The position numbers and the translations under genes are program-made. The notes below the pieces were generated by a model that had not been told where the DNA came from, did not search any database, and was given only the letters and a program-made list of their open reading frames with translations. This document shows, piece by piece, positions 36,341 through 54,245 of a DNA stretch of 64,000 nt (positions within the stretch are counted from its first letter, which is position 1; every line of letters begins with the position of its first letter). Source of the stretch: Euprymna scolopes (lineage: Eukaryota); NCBI GenBank assembly GCA_053919585.1, contig CM132785.1; one strand, written 5' to 3'.

Positions 36341-36628
36341 AATCCATGTTCTGTTCTCAACATGTAGGCAAAACAAATCCATGCATCCAAGTTAATGACT
36401 GAACCCTTAGATGATCTTCAGTTTGTGGTGGAATGAGACCACAAATAAAATTTATTACTACTATTAGAATGCTATGTTCCTTTAAAAGTTTTAAAAAATC
36501 ACTCAATGGCTAATAGCACCCTAACTGAACGCCCCTCATTCAAACTCCTTCGCCTTACAATCACATTTAACATGCATTGAAACAAATACATAGAATACAC
36601 TTCTGCATGTCACTTACAATGTAAATAT

Positions 36629-37075
36629 TATGGTGATTGCCGGGAGCTGGTGTCTTGTTGAAGTAGGAAGTGGGAAATACAGAAATAAAGATTGCTGAAC
36701 TCACACAAGAATTGGAGAAAATTATGTGTATTAAATTGAAAATATTACAAAGAAAAGGTTCTTGCAAAACTAATTGTGTTTGCGGCTTTAGAAGTCCAAT
36801 AAAAAGTTCTTTATCGTCCAAAAGTTTGGACGGCTCCCTGAAAAAGTTCAATCAAAATTCGGCGGCAAATTTAGGAGAGATTTTCCATAGTTGTCTATAG
36901 GCCGACGATTGATTCAAAAGGAGGGCGAATCTGTTTTTCCAGAATTCTGCTTATATTAAATGTTTGTTGATTGGCCAAGGAGCTTCATCCTAGCCAATCA
37001 AAATAGGGCTTTCAGAAAGGAGAAGTGGTCGATATAATTAGTTTGAACAAAGGGAGGTAACTACTTTTTTTTATA
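36629..37075 (-). mobile_element. Solo LTR of the BEL/Pao family, 4-bp TSD ATAT
   Basis: Reverse complement of the 45596-46035 LTR; ATAT at 36625-36628 and 37076-37079. Confidence 0.9.
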
Positions 37076-38922
37076 ATATGTCTTCATTTTCAAACACATA
37101 AAATCATTCTATCTATTGTAGTTCAATTTTGTATTTAACTATCAAGAGTAAAATAAGCCTATAAGTGTGTTTTTTAATTTATAAGTGGAACATTATTTTG
37201 TCATAAATTTACAGTAGAACATTATTTTGTCATAAATTACTTTTGTTGTTTTTAGACGTATAATTCTCAAATATTAGCCAATTCTACTTCTCAACTTGTC
37301 TTTCAAGAGGTTTTCTAAAGTCCATAATGTTTCAAAATAGTTTCTATTAAGAAATTTCCACATTCTTCTTGTTAACTTAAAACTGTTTTGAAAAGACTAG
37401 TGTCATAAGGGATAAAGTATTACGTCAAATTCAGCTAAAAGCGACACTCTTCTAGAGGTTGAAGGTTCAATACTCAATAGAGACAATACTAAGAATACAA
37501 CTTATTTAAGACCAAATCACTTATGGCTGGTAGAACGAGAGCATGCTACTCTGTGGATAAAATAAAGTGTTATATTCAAAATTCTGTGCAGATTTCAGAG
37601 TTCAACGGGAAGATATCCAAGTTCAACAAAATACATCTGAAACGTTGTGAAAATAACACTCAAGATAAGTAGAGTAGTCCTAATAATTCAAATATAAATT
37701 ATCAATCCTGCATCTAAAATTAAGAAACAAAATACTATTTCAAGAGCAAATATATTTTATAATTTTTATATAATTTTGAAGAGAATGTTGTTTTAATAAA
37801 AATCAATGCATCTATAAAAAAATATTCACTTTTAATATTTCCATTTTTTATGAAACTTATCTCGAAGACCTTGAACACTATTTTTTTACTTTATCTTATT
37901 AAAACTTTAGTTTCATCTTTTTTATTTAAAAATACTAAGGACAGTATTAATTTCTGAGTAGAATATTCATTAACGTTGTGATGTTCAAAGTAATTGACCT
38001 TACAGAAATCTACAATTTAAAAAATAAAATAAACTCATACAATTACAATAACCATTAAAGAACTAATAAACGTTAGAATTTTTACAAATAGGAATAATCA
38101 ACTGTTTTTCAAAAACTATTTTTGCATTAATCAGTTTGTTTTCGTTAAAGGTCATACAGCTGTACTTGAGGAATTTGGTCATAGATACATGCAGTTCAGA
38201 TGTTGTTCTATAAGTCTGTAAGAATAAATCAAATAATTTTAGCCTAATACTTTTATTACACAAGGAATTATGTTTTCTTCCTGCTGTAAATGTATTTATA
38301 GCATTCTAATTTTTTAAAGTATTTTTACACTAAAAAATTAAATCTGTTATTTTTTACAGGAATTTAAATATTAATCTGAAGGTAAAATAATATAATTCAA
38401 AATCAAATAATTTGAAGTTAAAATTAATTAGTTTTCTAAATTGGAGTAAACCTTCAAAACAATAAAATGAACAGGTAATGGAAAGTATTAATTGAAGTTA
38501 AAACTACTTAATTATAAAATTATAGCTTTGAATACATTTTAATACCAAAAAATTGAATCTCACGTCTTTTTAAATGAATAAATCTGAAGGTAAAATACTA
38601 TACTTAAAAATCAACATTTGAAGTTACAATCACTAAATCGAAGGTAAATCGTCAAAACAAAATCTGATACCCCCCCCCCTAAAAAATGAGCAGGTAATGG
38701 AAAATCTAAGTTGGAGATTATACTTACATTTTATGCATTCTTGTGATTTATCTGTTGAAAAAAATAATGCTGATATTTAATAAGGAAAGGAGATAACACT
38801 AAAATGTTTTAAGACTTCATAAATTGTATTGTTTTTCAATTGGAAAAGAAATCGACAAAGAAAATAATCTCTCAAAATAAAATGGAATGTAAACAAAAAG
38901 ATGAGTACAGTCTTTGTTGAAT

Positions 38923-39230
38923 TATTTTTGTATTATAATTCATCTAATATTTTTGTATTATAATTCATCTAATATTTTTGTATTATAATTCATCTAATAT
39001 TTTTGTATTATAATTCATCTAATATTTTTGTATTATAATTCATCTAATATTTTTGTATTATAATTCATCTAATATTTTTGTATTATAATTCATCTAATAT
39101 TTTTGTATTATAATTCATCTAATATTTTTGTATTATAATTCATCTAATATTTTTGTATTATAATTCATCTAATATTTTTGTATTATAATTCATCTAATAT
39201 TTTTGTATTATAATTCATCTAATATTTTTG
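38923..39230. repeat. Perfect 25-bp minisatellite, ~12 copies (atatttttgtattataattcatcta)
   Basis: catct recurs at 38941, 38966, 38991 and onward. Confidence 0.95.
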
Positions 39231-39999
39231 TTAGTAAATGTAATGCTTAGCCTCCATCTAAATTAATAAATAAATTGGAATAAAATGAACATTCTTAAAA
39301 TTAAAACGATTATTTGAACATTTGTTATCAGATCCAAATTTATTTGATGTTTCAACAACCATCGCTTTTTTAATGTGATTTCAAACATTTGAAACTATGC
39401 ATACAAAACAAATAAATTATATTTCATATTACTTAACAATATAACTGCAAACACATCATAACCATATCTTTTTATGCCAATACTGGAACAATTGTTGGTC
39501 ATCAAAATCCTTGGTCAGTAAATGTTCTTCTATTATTGCAGTCACTGAGGACGTGTTTCTGAGATTTTCACAAAGGCAGTTGATCATAAAATGGCTTCTT
39601 GATTACAATGTCTTTTGATTGTCTATCGTTAAATCAACAATGATTGTCATAGTTTACATTGGACAGTAGAGAACCTAGTGTTATTTTATAAAATTATTTT
39701 TATATAATGGTTTGAATTAAAGTTAAAATACAAAAATCAAGTACCATAGTTCTATTGTGTTCTAAACAGAAGCATTCGTTTCGAAGATGCCCTTATCTTA
39801 TCAAAGAACCTACTGTGATTTTATATGCTGGACATATCTGCTTGTGCAGAGATAAAAATTCTCAAATGCACTCGTGATGTTAGGCTGTATATATATGTAT
39901 GTGTTAACTTTGGTCAAAATCAAACTGTTCTATCTTTAATTAGGTTTTTTAATTACTGATTATTGACACTTATCAGAGGGATTTGGCAAAAAAACCTAT

Positions 40000-44789: not shown

Positions 44790-45591
44790 ACATTTAAAAT
44801 CGCAATGAAAGAAAAATTAGCTTTGAATAAACTGAAGGAAGTTTTGATAGCATACTTTGACTAAGAGAAAGACACTAACATTCTTGTAGATTCAAGCCCA
44901 GTTGGATTAGTTGCAGTTCTGACACAAAATGGGAAGGTATTATGCTACGCTAGTCATGCCCTCACAGACATAGAACAGTGGTTCTCCCAAACTGAAATAG
45001 AGAAGTTAGCTGTTGAGTATGCAACTGAACATTTTCATCTCTACTTATATGGAACAAGGTTCACCATCATCATGGATCATCGTCACTTCTTGGGATTGTG
45101 AAAAGTCTGGAACCAATGATGACAAGGATTGAGTGCTGCATCTTCATCTCATGCCGTACCAATACAGCTTTGTACATATCATCCTGAAAAGATAACCAGA
45201 ATCCTGCAGACTATCTCAGTCATCATCTACATCAACTACTATCAAAAGAAAATGTAGCAGAAGCCTACATAAAGTATGTAGTTTAAAACACTATACCCAA
45301 ATCTTTAACTCCTTAAACAAGCTACAGGGGAGAACCTTCTATTACAAAAGGTGAAGGCTGCAGTTGCAGATGGATGATGGAATGACCCACAGCTATCAAG
45401 CTTTTCTCCATTCAAGGACGAATTATCAGTGCCTAGTGGTCTCATCCTTCAAGGACATAGTTTTGTGATTCCTTTCAATTTAAGGAAAAAGTCAGCTGAC
45501 ATAGCCCATCACTCACATCAAGGCCAAAACATCTAATCAGAGAAAAGGTGTGGTTCCCAGGAATAGATAAACTGGTGGAAGTAAAATGAAT
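44790..45591 (+). pseudogene. Gypsy RNase H / integrase zinc-binding remnant (target of the BEL/Pao insertion)
   Basis: LVDSSPVGLVAVLTQ, YASHALTDIEQ, HHSHQG and IREKVWFPGID. Confidence 0.8.
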
Positions 45592-46169
45592 GTTGTATAA
45601 AAAAAGTAGTTACCTCCCTTTGTTCAAACTAATCGACCACTTCTCCTTTCTGAAAGCCCTATTTTGATTGGCTAGGATGAAGCTCCTTGGCCAATCAACA
45701 AACATTTAATATAAGCAGAATTCTGGAAAAACAGATTCGCACTTTTTTTTAATCAATCGTCGGCCTATAAACAACTATGGAAAATCTCTCCTAAATTTGC
45801 CGCCGAATTTTGATTGAACTTTTTCAGGGAGCCGTCCAAGACTTTGGACGATAAAGAACTTTTTTATTGGACTTCTAAAGCCGCAAACACAATTAGTTTT
45901 GCAAGAACCTTTTCCTTGTAATATTTTCAATTTAATATACATAATTTTCTCCAATTCTTGTGAGTTCAGCAATCTTTATTTCTGTATTTCCCACTTCCTA
46001 CTTCAACAAGACACCAGCTCCCGGCAATCGCCACATTTTGCAAAACTAAATAACGTTTAGCAGCTTGTTGTGAAAAAAAAAAAAAAATAACAAGGAAGAG
46101 AAGATTTGAACTCCTAAGGATATTTGCAAGGAAAATGGAAAAAGGAATACCAATTTGAGAAGCCCCTCT

Positions 46170-46595
46170 TAAAAAAAAAAAAAAAAAAATTATTTCGTTT
46201 CCAAAAAAAAAAAACGAATAAATAGTAATTCTGCCTTTGTTAAAGGTTTAAAATTCAATGAACATTTAAAAAAAAAAAAATTTTTATTTCGTTTCCAAAA
46301 AAAAAAAACGAATAAATAGTAATTCTGCCTTTGTTAAAGGTTTAAAATTCAATGAACATTTAAAAAAAAAAAAAAATTTATTTCGTTTCCAAAAAAAAAA
46401 AAAAAACGAATAAATAGTAATTCTGCCTTTGTTAAAGGTTTAAAATTCAATGAACATTTAAAAAAAAAAAAAAATTTATTTCGTTTCCAAAAAAAAAAAC
46501 GAATAAATAGTAATTCTGCCTTTGTTAAAGGTTTAAAATTCAATGAACATTTAAAAAAAAAAAAAAAAATTTATTTCGCTTCCAAAAAAAAAATC
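46170..46595 (+). repeat. ~95-bp tandem repeat (4.3 copies) in the BEL/Pao 5' leader
   Basis: tttatttcgtttcc(A)ncgaataaatagtaattctgcctttgttaaaggtttaaaattcaatgaacattt(A)n. Confidence 0.9.
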
Positions 46596-46901
46596 GAACA
46601 CATAATATAATATTTCCTGTTGTATTATTGAAAGTTTGAAACTTTCTACCGACTGAAGTTCGCGTAAAGCAGGCATCATTCGTTCAAGAGCGTGGCGTTG
46701 TACTACGTCATACGAATGTAAATAAACATGGTCTTCTTATATAAGGGCGATAACTCCACTTATGCAAACTTCCGTCCAAGGGCCATAACTCTTCTCGGCC
46801 TATCCACAGACATTAATCAACAATACTCCCACAAAATTTAACTTGTTAAAAAAAAAAAAACTTAAAACCATCATCCTTTCCCAAAACAAAACAACTGTAA
46901 A

Positions 46902-49900
46902 ATGGATGATTTCCGGACCTTGAAGGGTGTTAGGGCGCTCATGGACTCCAGAAACGTGTTAAAGGAAGATATTTCCCTTAACACGGACATGTTGGAAGAA
47001 CGCGAAGGTTTGAGAAAAAAAACCTTCCAGGAGGAAGAAGCTATAATTAAGGAGTTGCAGATTGAGGTCCGCTCCTTAAATGATAAAATTAAAGGGCTGT
47101 GTATAAAAGCAGAACTTGATTTAAGGGAGTGTGGATTTGTTGAGGAGCAAAGGAGGGAAATTGGCTTTCGAGCTAATATTAATGATCGCCTTGCCGACAT
47201 TGAAAACTCTATTGAAAACCCCACCACATCACGGAAAAATGAACCTACCTCTGTACCTTTGCTTTCTGTCCCCAAGTTGCAGTGTGCCACCTTTAGTGGA
47301 ATCAATCCTTCCAAATTTGAATATAAAAATTTTATTGCTCAATTCAAAAACTGTACTGAGTCTATTGATTCCGGCAGGGCAAAATTAGCCTTATAGAAAG
47401 GGTATTTGAGTGACTATGCCTTGCAATTGGTTTCCCATCTGACCTTGGAGGATGGTAATTACGATGTAGCAGTGGATTTGCTGACCAAGGAATTCCTGGA
47501 TGTCCCCTTTATAATAAGTGAGATCTTCAAGCAGATCATTTCTACTTCTCCTCAATATGACCCTGAATTTGTGGCTGTGAAGCGATACCTTGCTGAGGTG
47601 AGAGCGGATTTATCCGAATTGAGGACTTCATATCTGATAGATTTTTTTGAGGAGAACTCCCCCGGATTTTTGCTAGTCAGCCATATTATATATGAAAAGT
47701 TGCCAGTTGCCTTGAGAAGGGAAATTAACCACAGAGTGGGCACGAGTTACCCGTCTCTAACACAAATTTTTCAAAATTACAATGAGGCAGTTCGTGCTCT
47801 GTCTCGAAATAAAAAACTTTTTCGGGTTACGGAAAACCCCTCGAAGAATGATAAAGGGCAGGTCAAGACCTATGAAAAAAAGAATGGTGATGCTGCTCTA
47901 CAGAATTTCACTACAAGCTCTTCTGGGGCATATTGCAAACTTTGCACATCACGTGGCCACACTATGCTAAAATGCACCAAGTTTGCATCTTATGAAGCCA
48001 GAGTTGAGAGGTGCAAGCAGCTAAAACTGTGTACAGGATGTTCCAGCTTAAAACATAAAAGTGAGAATTGTCCTGGACTCCAGAGCAAATCACCCCTCAC
48101 GTGCAGCTTATGCCTTTCAAAGGCGCATATTGCACCCCTGTGCAACACTAAGAGAGTGGTTTCTCTATTCTCTCACGTTTATGAAAACGAAATCATATTG
48201 CCTGTTGTAGCTATTTCTTTAAATTATGGATCTGAGAAAGCTACTATTAACTGCCTATTGGACACAGGAAGTCAGCGTTCATATTTTTCTAAGAAAATAT
48301 TAAAGGAGCTGAAGTATCCTGATGGAAATTCTGATCCAACCGATTATCAAATGAAGACCTATGCGGGTGTGACTATGAAGCGATTTGAACAGGTTGTCTT
48401 GAACGTTACCGTGGGAAAGGGGAAACAACTCCCTATTCCTGTTTTAATCGATGATGGATTCAGTATGCAGTTTGAGTTCGCCAGCTTTGGCCAAGTGAAG
48501 TCCAACCTGAATGAGTTGAAACACAGATTGGCATTTTCAAATGAAAAACAGGGTGATTCCATAACAATTCAGGGTATCCTGGGAGTTGACATATTTCAGT
48601 TCATGGAGGGTTCCAGAATCATTAAATGTATGAATGGACAGGCCTGGGATTTGCCTCAAGGGATTGCCCCATTTGGTAATGTACAACACTTTTTATATCC
48701 TCATCAAGTCAGTCCTGTGAGATGTGGAATTTCCAAAATAATTGTCAATTATCATACTACAATATCCAAATATGCCCATTGCCCTGAACGACAGTTGAAT
48801 TCCATATTGGAACCCAAGTCTTCCTACCCGGATCCGTTTCCAGATGTATTTGAGAATTCCAACGTGGAACGGAATTTGGAAAAAATGTTTGCTGTGGACT
48901 CAGCTGCTGCTTCCCATGACGAAGAACTAATTGGTGATTATGACAGAAATAGGATTGAAATCTTCAGGAAGTCTATCGAATTCAGGGACAATTCTTATTT
49001 CGTGGATCTACCTTGGCATAAAGACAAAATCGATTCCGTTCCCTCTAACTATCAAGTCGCTCTTAAAGTGCTTGACAGAACAATGCTTTCATTGGAGAAA
49101 AGGGACTTGGATAAGACCTATACTGATATATTTCTTCAGCAAGAGAGCGAAGGGATTATCGAGAGAATTGAAGTCGCCCCACAAGATTTCTGCAAATACA
49201 TTTGGATACCCCATCGACCGGTCTTTAAGTCGGATCAACAGGTTACCACTAAAATCAGGCCTGTTTTTAACTGTTCGTTGAAGACCGGGGGTGGTTACTC
49301 CCTCAATGAAGCATCTTATCCGGGTGTGAACATGATGAATAACATGCTTGAACTGTTGCTCTTATTTCTTACTAACAAATATGTATTATTGGGAGACATA
49401 AGAAAGGCATTTCTTATGATCAAACTCCGGTCGGTTGAGGACAAAAACAGATTTTGTTTTTTCGTAAAAGATGGAGACAATTTGCTTTGCTTCCGATATT
49501 GTACATTGATATTTGGCTTCAATGCCAGCCCATTCATTTTAAATTACGTTCTCAAACACCATGTCAGCCGTTTTCCGAATGATGCATGTACTGAGATGCT
49601 GAAAAATCGATTTTATGTCGACAATTTATGTATGACCAGCAATTCTTCTGAGGAAATAATCAGTCTCTATAGGAGTGCCGTGCCTCGTCTGCAGACGGGA
49701 AATTTCCAGTTGAGATCGTGTAACTCCAACTATGAACCTCTTCGAGACATTATAACGGAGGATGACAGAATCGTGCAGCATGGTTGCGAGTACGAAAAGG
49801 TCTTGGGATATAAATATCACCCTGAATTGGATACTATTAGCATTGTTAACACTATGGTTCAGAGGAACATACTCTCAAAAGGGATATTTTGGCCCAGACA

Positions 49901-52345
49901 GCAAAAATATTTGACCCACTGTCACTATGTGCCTCGGTTACAATTAGGGCAAAAATACTTCTCCGAAGATTGTGGTTGCTCAAGTTGGGTTGGGATGAAA
50001 AGGTTCCTACTGACATAATGACTACCTGGTCGAATTTGGCCGAGGACCTTTCTGGTCTAGGTGATCTATTTTTTACAAGCCATGCTATAGACACTGGTAG
50101 CCAACTGAAATTATATTTGTTCTGTGATGCGTCACCACAGGCTTATGGATTTGTCATATATGGCGTGCAAAATGGGAAGTCTCACATAATATTTTCCAAG
50201 GTTAAAGTGGCCCCGATGAGGACAAAGACATTACCTATGATGGAGTTGCTTGCAGTATATATTGCATTCAAGGCTTTAACTATGATACTGAGATCCTTCT
50301 CTGGTGTCAACATAGAGGACGTTTTTGTTTCTGTGGATGCGCAAGTTGTTTTGTCATGGTTGCTCACCGAGAATATAAAGGCAAAAAGTCTGTATACCAG
50401 AAACAGAATTAAAGATATTCGAGAAATGAAGGAGAAGTTGAGTGAGGAATTTGGGTTGGGCATTCATTACAAATATGTTCCTTCTGCCGACAACCCGGCT
50501 GACCTTCTTTCTCGTGGTATCACTCTGGAAAAGTTTAAACAGGGATTGGACTACTGGACATGCGGACCTGCGTGGCTTGTTGAGCAACCTGAGAAGTGGC
50601 CTACGAGTACTTTGAGCTGTCTGAGTCCGGAAAATAAGTGTCATGTGGAAAGTGTTTTCCATAATACATTGAGTGAAGCTGTTAGGGAACCACTGATTCC
50701 ATTTGACAGGTTCTCGGACTTCAACAAGTTGTGTCGATCAACTGCTTTCGTATTCAAGTTTGTGCATCGATGCAGAAAAGTGAAGGAACATTCAGATCCA
50801 AAACAGACAGCCACGAATTACCTGATAAAGATGATGCAATTGCAATCGTTTGAAAAGGAAATTGCTTATTTGAAGAATCCTCTTGACAGGGAAATCCCAG
50901 TGCTGGTGAAGAATCTTAACGTTTTCATCGATTCTGATGAGATTTTGAGAGTGGATGGTAGAATTGCCAATTCGACAAGATATGACTACAATTTAATCTA
51001 TCCAATATTGCTTGCAAAACATCACTCTCTTACAAAATTACTGATTATGGATAGCCATAATCGATGCAGTCATTTGGGTATTGGTACGACAGTGACCAAA
51101 TTGCGGTTATCCGGATACTGGGTCCCACAGGCAAGACAGTCTGTGAAGACTGTGATTTCTAACTGCAATACCTGTAGGAAATTCAACAGCCTAGCCTTCA
51201 AATACCCCAAATTGACAAATTTGCCAAAACACCGTGTTAGATTAATCAATCCTTTCCAACACACAGGCATAGACTACACAGGTCACATCTGGGTACAAAG
51301 AGATGGAAAGTCTCATAAAATGTATTTATTAATTTTCACATGTATGAACGTGAGGGCTGTCCACATTGAACTTGTACCTGATATGAGCACACAAGCCTTC
51401 ATTCAAGCCTTGATTCGGTTTTCAAATACCTATGGAGTTCCCAGTCACATATACAGTGACAATGCACGTTCCTTTAATGCAGCCTTAGGTGGTGATGTAA
51501 TTAAACATCACATAAACAGTAATGAGTTCTGTAACTCATATTCAAGCGCTGGCATTAAACACATAAAAATACCCTTATACTCCCCTTGGGTTGGAAGTAC
51601 TTGGGAAAGAATGATCAGAGTGATAAAGTCATGCCTATTCAAAACACTTGGCCGATCTAAAATCAGTTATTTTAACCTTCTAACCCTTCTATCAGACATC
51701 AAAAGAGCCGTGAACTCTCGACCTCTGACCTACAGATGCTCTACCGATATTGATCTGCTTCCCTTAACACCCAACTGCTTCACTCATCCAAATATAAACT
51801 GTGAGCTCTCCTTCCAATCTGACACACCCAGTTTGGTTGAGACAGAACCAATAACTAGGTCTCTCCTTGTGAGTACCTTGGAAAGCAGAGAGGAATTAAT
51901 ATCTAAATTCAAAGAGATGTGGCACGATGAATATTTGCTAAGTCTGAGGGAGAGTTGCAAGGATTTACACGAAATCGAATTTCACAATAAAATAAATATC
52001 AACGACGTAATACTCGTCAAGAATCCGGCCAAGTCCAGGCCCTTCTGGAAGCTGGGCAGAGTTATTGAGCTATTTAGTAGCAACGATGGCAAGGTTCGTT
52101 CTGCTCGAATAAAAAGAGGTGATGGTGCAGTGGAAACACATAGCCTCAAACATTTATATCTGTTGGAGTTATCACTCACTCATAACCACTTTCCTGACAC
52201 CCCAGCAGATGAGGAATCTGATGAATTTGCATCCCTCCCTATAGAAGAATGTAGGGACCCATCGGAACCTTCAGAAGAAATGGCCAATTACAGGCCTAAA
52301 AGGATCAAGAAATCCACATCTAATCCTGAATACATTTATTATTAA
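46902..52345 (+). CDS. BEL/Pao gag-pol polyprotein (~1814 aa if repaired); one in-frame TAG (47394-47396) and one frameshift (~49880)
   Basis: Three Cys/His gag knuckles; protease LLDTGSQRSY; RT DIRKAFL, FGFNASPFIL, FYVDN; Pao RNase H FDPLS, FCDAS, NPADLLSRG; integrase HLG..YW..C..C, GIDYTG, SDNA, WERMI. Confidence 0.92.
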
Positions 52346-52860
52346 AAAAAAAAAAAAAGAAAATTTGCATTGTAAATGGGCCATAATAATGCCTAACACA
52401 TTAAGGTATATTCTATCTGTTAAATATTTCTATTAAACAGAATATTCTGTACAATTTAATTTATACATTACATTTATTATTAAAAAAAAAAACATTTTCC
52501 ATTGTAAATGGGCCATAATAATGCCCAACACATTAAGGTATATTCTATCTGTTAAATATTTCTATTAAACAGAATATTCTGTACAATTTAATTTATATAT
52601 TACATTTATTATTAAAAAAAAAAAAATTTTCCATTGTAAATGGGCCATAATAATGCCCAACACATTAAGGTATATTCTACCTGTTAAATATTTCTATTAA
52701 ACAATATTCTGTACAATTTAATTTATACATTACATTTATTATAAAAAAAAAAAGAAAATTTGCATTGTAAATGGGCCATAATAATGCCTAACACATTAAG
52801 GTATATTCTACCCGTTAAATATTTCTATTAAACAGAATATTCTGTACAATTTAATTTAAA
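52331..52860 (+). repeat. ~132-bp tandem repeat (4 copies) in the BEL/Pao 3' UTR
   Basis: tacatttattat(A)n...cattgtaaatgggccataataatgcc...acagaatattctgtacaatttaattta. Confidence 0.9.
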
Positions 52861-53562
52861 CACTTTACGTAGCAATCACAAATATTGTAACTGATTGCCT
52901 TTATATAGCATGCAACGATTTCAATCGTCGCATTATTTGTTGTTGTTGGGAGAGTATAAAAAAAAGTAGTTACCTCCCTTTGTTCAAACTAATCGACCAC
53001 TTCTCCTTTCTGAAAGCCCTATTTTGATTGGCTAGGATGAAGCTCCTTGGCCAATCAACAAACATTTAATATAAGCAGAATTCTGGAAAAACAGATTCGC
53101 ACTTTTTTTTAATCAATCGTCGGCCTATAAACAACTATGGAAAATCTCTCCTAAATTTGCCGCCGAATTTTGATTGAACTTTTTCAGGGAGCCGTCCAAG
53201 ACTTTGGACGATAAAGAACTTTTTATTGGACTTCTAAAGCCGCAAACACAATTAGTTTTGCAAGAACCTTTTCCTTGTAATATTTTCAATTTAATATACA
53301 TAATTTTCTCCAATTCTTGTAAGTTCAGCAATCTTTATTTCTGTATTTCCCACTTCCTACTTCAACAAGACACCAGCTCCCGGCAATCGCTATAGTTGGT
53401 CTACCGAATACCATTAAGAAACCAGCACCAGGGCCGCAACATGATAGCATAAAAGAAAATGATTCTAAAGAAAAAGAGATGAAAGGGTATGCAGACAAAA
53501 ACGGCCTGCAGAAAACAGAAGCAAACAAAGATATGCAGAATTTGAACAAGGTTAATTTTATT

Positions 53563-54245
53563 AAACACTAGCGGGGGTACCCGGCGTTGCCCGAGTGTTT
53601 GTTTCCGGGACGGGGGGGGGGGAGTTTTAAAAAATGTTATGGTAGGTAAGTAGGAAGGATCAAACCCGGAGTCATGAGTAAAAGTAGGAAAATAAAGTGT
53701 AAAAAAAAAAAACAAAAACATCTGCAACGTTAACAGTTCGGCCACCAAGAAAAGTCCATTCCAGTTGTTTAGGAAAAAAAACAAAAAAAAACGACTACGG
53801 TAGGTCGGCGCGAACGTGAAAATATAATGTGAATTGTCCAGCACGCTAACCACTACGCCACAGAGCACTGCAGCTTAGTTTAGTGATTTTAAATAACTTC
53901 ACATGAAAGAACTACGAAGCCAAACCGGTGTTCTCTTCTCAACTGTTCCTTGTGAACGATCCCCAAACGGTGTTAAGTGGTGGCAGGGGGAGGAGGAATT
54001 TATTAGAGAGAAAATATTTTACCACTTCCATTGATCTTAACCGATTTTGGCCGTGACTTCTCAGCAGAAAAAGTATAGAAATCTAAGATTATCGAGGAAT
54101 TTGAGAAATAATAAGCCTATAACACACCTCAGATATTGTTCTGCCGTTTGTGCATATTATATTTGCATGAAATATCTTGATTTTTAATCCTATTAAGGTC
54201 AAAATCCGACGGGAAAAAATGAATTCATTTTATTTATATAGAGAT
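53563..54245 (+). mobile_element. Non-autonomous Helitron-like element (Lep1-type ends)
   Basis: 5' actagc...acccggcgttgcccg hairpin end and 3' ttttatttatatagagat end. Confidence 0.6.

Follow-up and report, generated by a model that had tools for sequence, protein, structure and literature searches.

Reverse transcription of LTR retrotransposons is usually primed by a host tRNA, which anneals to a primer-binding site (PBS) next to the 5' LTR. Self-priming, in which the element uses its own RNA, has been demonstrated experimentally only in the Tf1/sushi branch of Ty3/gypsy (Tf1, Tf2, sushi-ichi), where the first ~11 nt of the mRNA serve as primer after RNase H cleavage, and it is predicted for the Tcn1 clade and, from LTR-PBS complementarity alone, for the Ty1/copia TAR lineage (Houba, Osr-1) (PMC6317226, PMC5445492). 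A self-priming ancestor of LTR elements has been proposed (PMC3601003). In contrast, the ICTV 2021 profile describes the BEL/Pao elements (Belpaoviridae) as tRNA-primed, with an 18-nt PBS complementary to the 3' end of host tRNA-Arg or tRNA-Gly (PMC8742986), and in the literature that could be searched no report of self-priming in BEL/Pao was found. Here we describe a BEL/Pao element of Euprymna scolopes that lacks a tRNA-type site and carries in its place a sequence complementary to its own LTR, a pairing that is retained with different sequences in related families.

Results

Organization of the element

The window, a stretch of 64,000 nucleotides from contig CM132785.1 (assembly GCA_053919585.1; host genome 5.9 Gb), contains a full-length LTR retrotransposon at 45596-53394, here termed family A, the ends of which were fixed by target-site duplications (TSDs). 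The features of the element and of a related solo LTR are as follows.

45592-45595 (+), TSD GTTG, left copy
45596-46035 (+), 5' LTR, 440 nt, starting TATA and ending CACA (CATA in most of 30 family copies read)
45832-45904 (+), the only LTR block still alignable between families A and B
45883-45887 (+), GCAAA, an upstream copy of part of the PBS, pairing with TTTGC (45898-45902) in a small predicted local hairpin
45893-45904 (+), proposed self-primer TTAGTTTTGCAA, with the predicted RNase H cut at its 3' end (45904)
45934-45967 (+), possible poly(A) region, inferred from sequence only: AATATA (45934-45939) followed by a T/G-rich stretch (45956-45967)
46036-46037 (+), 2-nt spacer TT
46038-46049 (+), proposed PBS TTGCAAAACTAA
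46173-46593 (+), tandem repeat in the leader, 94-nt unit, 4.4 copies
46902-52345 (+), gag-pol region, in three ORFs (46902-47396, 47406-50018 and 49889-52345)
52948-52954 (+), polypurine tract GGGAGAG, abutting the 3' LTR
52955-53394 (+), 3' LTR, with the primer segment at 53252-53263
53395-53398 (+), TSD GTTG, right copy
36629-37075 (-), solo LTR of the same family with TSD ATAT (36625-36628 and 37076-37079) and the primer segment at 36762-36773

The two LTRs were 99.5% identical over the 433 aligned nt, with two more differences at the 3' tip. In this copy gag-pol is broken by an in-frame TAG after the first ORF and a frame change near 49889-50018, while other copies of the family have open frames up to 1826 aa. 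A Pfam search of the third ORF identified, in order, Peptidase_A17 (PF05380, 1.5e-29), Integrase_H2C2 (PF17921, 2.3e-08) and DUF5641 (PF18701, 1.3e-10), which assigns the element to BEL/Pao; only Pao-type domains and no Ty3/gypsy-type pol were found, and the nearest homologues all carry PF05380. For the gag domain DUF1759 (PF03564) the ORFs of the window gave no Pfam hit at E<=0.001, and three homologues (P0001-P0003, 44-99% identical) carry PF03564. The polypurine tract is also present in family B. The LTRs of this lineage end TA...TA with 4-bp TSDs, and the internal junctions read PPT + 2 nt and 2 nt + PBS, as if integrase trims two bases from each end.

The leader is about 870 nt long up to the first ORF, and its tandem repeat, identified with TRF (94% matches), is rich in A-runs. 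The element is inserted into what looks like the coding region of another transposable element (45400-45595 and 53399-53868), with a 155-aa ORF on the minus strand at 53401-53868. Elsewhere in the window are a tandem array of a 25-nt unit in about 20 copies (38823-39322) and a 17-nt inverted repeat (TTGCAATATCATACAAA; 32077 and 32850) with arms about 925 nt apart, near repeats of AATTTTGCAA and unrelated to the LTR element. Two other AGTTTTGCAA sites in the window (19563 and 31876) are also unrelated.

Complementarity between the LTR and the primer-binding position

The initial annotation had noted that no TGG-type PBS follows the 5' LTR and that the sequence two nucleotides beyond the LTR end is the perfect reverse complement of an LTR segment; this observation was confirmed, with all of its coordinates. 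TTAGTTTTGCAA is the exact reverse complement of TTGCAAAACTAA, the helix can extend to 45906 with G-U and A-U, and no TGG-type site is present. To assess whether such a match could arise by chance, the LTR was shuffled with preservation of dinucleotides; 1 of 5000 shuffles gave a complement of 12 nt or more at offsets 0-4, close to the earlier rough estimate of ~1e-4. Of 62,623 other 12-mers in the window, six have a perfect complement in the LTR. The LTR is AT-rich and the core TTGCAA is itself a palindrome, which had been overlooked, although the six outer positions are not palindromic. In 28 of 30 other genomic copies of the family both 12-mers are intact and complementary, and the remaining two each have one substitution in the PBS.

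A further U5/leader stem had been proposed between CAACAAG (46004-46010) and CTTGTTG (46064-46070). This stem was absent from the predicted fold and is not conserved in families B and D, and is therefore not supported.

Covariation in related families

Compensatory covariation in related families had been named beforehand as a test of self-priming, and it was found. Assembled RNA contigs (Logan), from runs labelled mollusc or invertebrate, were aligned to the LTR; one contig spans the whole LTR, so neither a start nor a poly(A) site can be read from them, but contigs of other LTR families matched only 45867-45912. Following these contigs and protein-level relatives yielded four more families in the same genome and one in another assembly. 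The LTR segment, spacer and PBS of each family are given below.

Family A, window: TTAGTTTTGCAA, TT, TTGCAAAACTAA
Family B, same genome, 74-77% identical to A in coding DNA, 13 PBS copies found: TAAGTTTTGCAA, TT, TTGCAAAACTTA
Family D, same genome, one old copy (locus L087), LTR end and spacer not defined: TCAGTTTTGCAA, TTGTAAATCTGA (TCAG.../...CTGA)
Family E, same genome, LTRs of 467 nt and identical, TSD GTAT: CAATTGTTTGCAA, AT, TTGCAAACAATTG
Family F, same genome, LTRs of 508 nt, TSD GTAA: ATCTGTTGCAA, CA, TTGCAACAGAT
Family H, ENA assembly ERZ25072293 (locus L115), LTRs of 922 nt: ACATTTAACTTGCAA, TT, TTGCAAGTTAAATGT

The complementarity covers 11-15 nt in the six families and is perfect in A, B, E, F and H. 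It is decayed in the single copy of D, where the C:G pair is kept and the other two departures are one G-T pair and one mismatch. In every family with a defined LTR end (A, B, E, F and H) the site begins exactly 2 nt after the LTR. Counting from the 3' end of the primer, positions 1-6 are constant (TTGCAA), while positions 7-12 each show two or three different Watson-Crick pairs with no mismatch in the four well-kept families compared (A, B, E and F); six of the 13 pair positions change on both sides and stay Watson-Crick. Shuffle tests gave 1/5000 (B), 0/5000 (E), 3/5000 (F) and 0/3000 (H), a per-family probability of about 2e-4 to 6e-4 or lower. As the match is repeated in families with unalignable LTRs (E, F and H), always at offset +2, chance complementarity is excluded.

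No relative carries a tRNA-type site at that place, which argues strongly against a host primer. A host small RNA ending in ...TTGCAA, such as a tRNA half cut in a GCA (Cys) anticodon loop, with the LTR match being secondary, was considered because TTGCAA is constant at the start of all six sites and half-tRNA primers are known for copia-type elements (PMC6317226). However, the variable 5-9 nt beyond TTGCAA differ between families and each time match that family's own LTR, which a host RNA cannot follow, six nucleotides alone are too few for a primer site, and no site starts with TGG. ARAGORN found no tRNA gene in a search confined to the window. On present evidence this alternative appears very unlikely.

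Between A and B the LTRs were alignable only in the block at 45832-45904 (blastn, 83% over 76 nt; supported by a three-family alignment), which stops exactly at the 3' end of the primer segment, and similarity resumes at the PBS and leader. The segment ends 124-146 nt before the LTR end in A, B, E and F and about 275 nt before it in H, which fits an R-U5 distance. All families share GATAAAG/GTAAAAG and TTGGAC motifs upstream of the primer block (45850-45878 in the 5' LTR; reverse complement at 36787-36813 in the solo LTR), and A/T-rich then TCTTGTG-like stretches similar to the possible poly(A) region of A appear in B, C and D.

A further family, C (LTR segment TCAGTTTTGCAA), was represented in 40 loci only by solo, 3' or truncated LTRs, from which its PBS could not be read; at loci L062-L064 (G000:C3:124.535-124.543 Mb) its LTRs occur in a tandem array with a period of about 2.16 kb, joined to a GC-rich unrelated sequence. 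Pattern searches anchored on short AT-rich LTR ends or leader motifs returned noise equal to the reversed-pattern control. Pieces of two further families (L108-L111) showed no LTR pair, an ENA contig (L077) lacks LTRs, and a Mytilus locus (L112) and loci L114 and L116 gave no clean LTR pair. In ERZ25072293 two BEL/Pao elements lie head to tail (L115, 5808-10842 and 12745-18441), the 5' LTR of the second, which has an 1898-aa open frame, starting inside the end of the first.

As a control, a BEL/Pao element of the moth Ostrinia furnacalis (L113, 6584-13831) was analysed in the same way. It has TGT...ACA LTRs (496 nt, 98% identical), a 5-bp TSD (ACAAT) and a canonical TGG-initiated tRNA-type site, TGGTGCCGAAACCCGGGA, 7 nt after the LTR, with no self-match above 6 nt. 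The test therefore discriminates, and tRNA-type BEL/Pao elements do exist, as the ICTV profile states.

Predicted RNA structure

The long-range helix between the LTR segment and the PBS was present in the minimum-energy fold of A, B, E and F, and partly in D; in A it was also in the centroid fold. Overall fold energies were unremarkable (z = -1.9 for A and +0.2 for B). The helix closes a domain of roughly 130 nt, and long-range U5-leader helices exist in retroviruses, so the pairing could be only a structural helix of the leader (packaging, dimerisation or translation control), the real primer being something not yet seen. The palindrome TTGCAA, and a second palindrome AACGTT at 46052-46057, which is kept as AACGTT/AAACGTTT in families A and B and as ACGTTT in D, could serve RNA-RNA contacts. 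Yet in five families the helix occupies the very nucleotides where a primer must sit, starting 2 nt after an LTR end that is itself set by the 3' end of the primer, and no other candidate site, TGG or otherwise, lies next to the LTR. A purely structural helix need not keep that register, and this reading is considered unlikely.

The primer also sits in a small predicted hairpin, in which its 3' half pairs with a short upstream motif copying part of the PBS. The local fold was predicted in seven families, with the following motifs and partners.

Families A-D: GCAAA, pairing with TTTGC
Family E: GCAAAC, pairing with GTTTGC
Family F: GCAAC, pairing with GTTGC
Family H: GCAAG, pairing with CTTGC

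The fifth pair is A-T in A-E, C-G in F and G-C in H, and so changes on both sides. The 3' half of the primer has, therefore, two exclusive partners, which could represent a switch or a processing signal, although this is inference.

Discussion

These data suggest that minus-strand DNA synthesis of this BEL/Pao lineage is primed by its own RNA rather than by a host tRNA, a reading to which we assign a probability of about 0.8. The interpretation of the initial annotation, Tf1-like self-priming, is supported, except for its second stem and with its RNA start at 45893-45895 remaining a prediction. The 3' boundary of an LTR is set by where minus-strand synthesis starts, and a segment whose 3' end pairs exactly 2 nt beyond that boundary in five families is therefore what a primer would look like. 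In the proposed mechanism, a segment near the start of the R region (45893-45904) folds back about 130 nt onto the site 2 nt downstream of the 5' LTR, RNase H, by analogy with Tf1, cuts after 45904, and the freed 3' end is extended through U5 and the remainder of R. Plus-strand strong-stop synthesis would later copy the primer, rewriting the PBS from the LTR segment in each cycle, which would explain why the two match and the clean covariation. The complementarity, its exact position, its covariation across families and its place in predicted folds are shown by the analysis, whereas the RNA start, the RNase H cut, the release of a primer 3' end and the role of the hairpin are inferred; for the cut the support is indirect, namely that inter-family LTR conservation ends exactly at 45904.

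The position of the RNA start is a prediction from sequence motifs. A TATA-like box about 30 nt upstream and an initiator-like T(C/T/A)AGTT fit a start at the paired segment, but these are only suggestive, and a start at the A of that motif would leave the covarying second position just outside the RNA. A CCAAT/TATAAG module at 45668-45715 in family A, not conserved in B or D, could place the start about 150 nt earlier, and the conserved hairpin partner 6-10 nt upstream suggests that the RNA may begin before the paired segment, unlike Tf1.

A more speculative and doubtful possibility is that self-priming in this clade uses a two-state primer, the 3' half of which is held in the hairpin by an upstream mimic of the PBS (GCAA+N) and switches to the true PBS for priming, and that the clade is widespread in marine invertebrates. 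Self-priming would then be present in all three LTR-retrotransposon superfamilies, which would support the idea that hairpin or self-priming preceded tRNA priming. The three-way covariation between upstream mimic, primer and PBS gives a concrete, testable RNA switch, its function being inferred.

A BEL/Pao clade that self-primes would extend the mechanism to the third LTR superfamily, would call for correction of the family description, and bears on whether self-priming is ancestral or arose several times. It would also explain why PBS-based annotation tools would fail to find a tRNA site in these abundant elements; at least 398 genomic places matched the 281-nt LTR-PBS junction of family A.

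The element works like Tf1, on this reading, but is not a member of the Tf1/sushi group. In common with Tf1/sushi elements there is no tRNA site, an 11-15 nt site just downstream of the 5' LTR is complementary to a segment of the element's own LTR transcript, and an RNase H cut is expected to free the primer (PMC6317226, PMC5445492). The pol, however, is Pao-type and not that of a chromovirus, the paired segment is only presumed to lie near the start of the RNA, and the primer is embedded in a small covarying hairpin with an upstream partial copy of the PBS, which is not known to us for Tf1. As in the copia TAR lineage, self-priming is predicted from LTR-PBS complementarity (PMC6317226), but those are plant elements with integrase upstream of RT, whereas here integrase follows the Pao domain. 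With canonical BEL/Pao elements (PMC8742986) the lineage shares a Pao-type pol, DUF5641, H2C2 integrase, LTRs, a short TSD and a polypurine tract. The Ostrinia element fits the tRNA-primed description of that family, while the present lineage does not: its site has no TGG start and is complementary to its own LTR, its LTRs end TA...TA rather than TG...CA, and its TSD is 4 bp.
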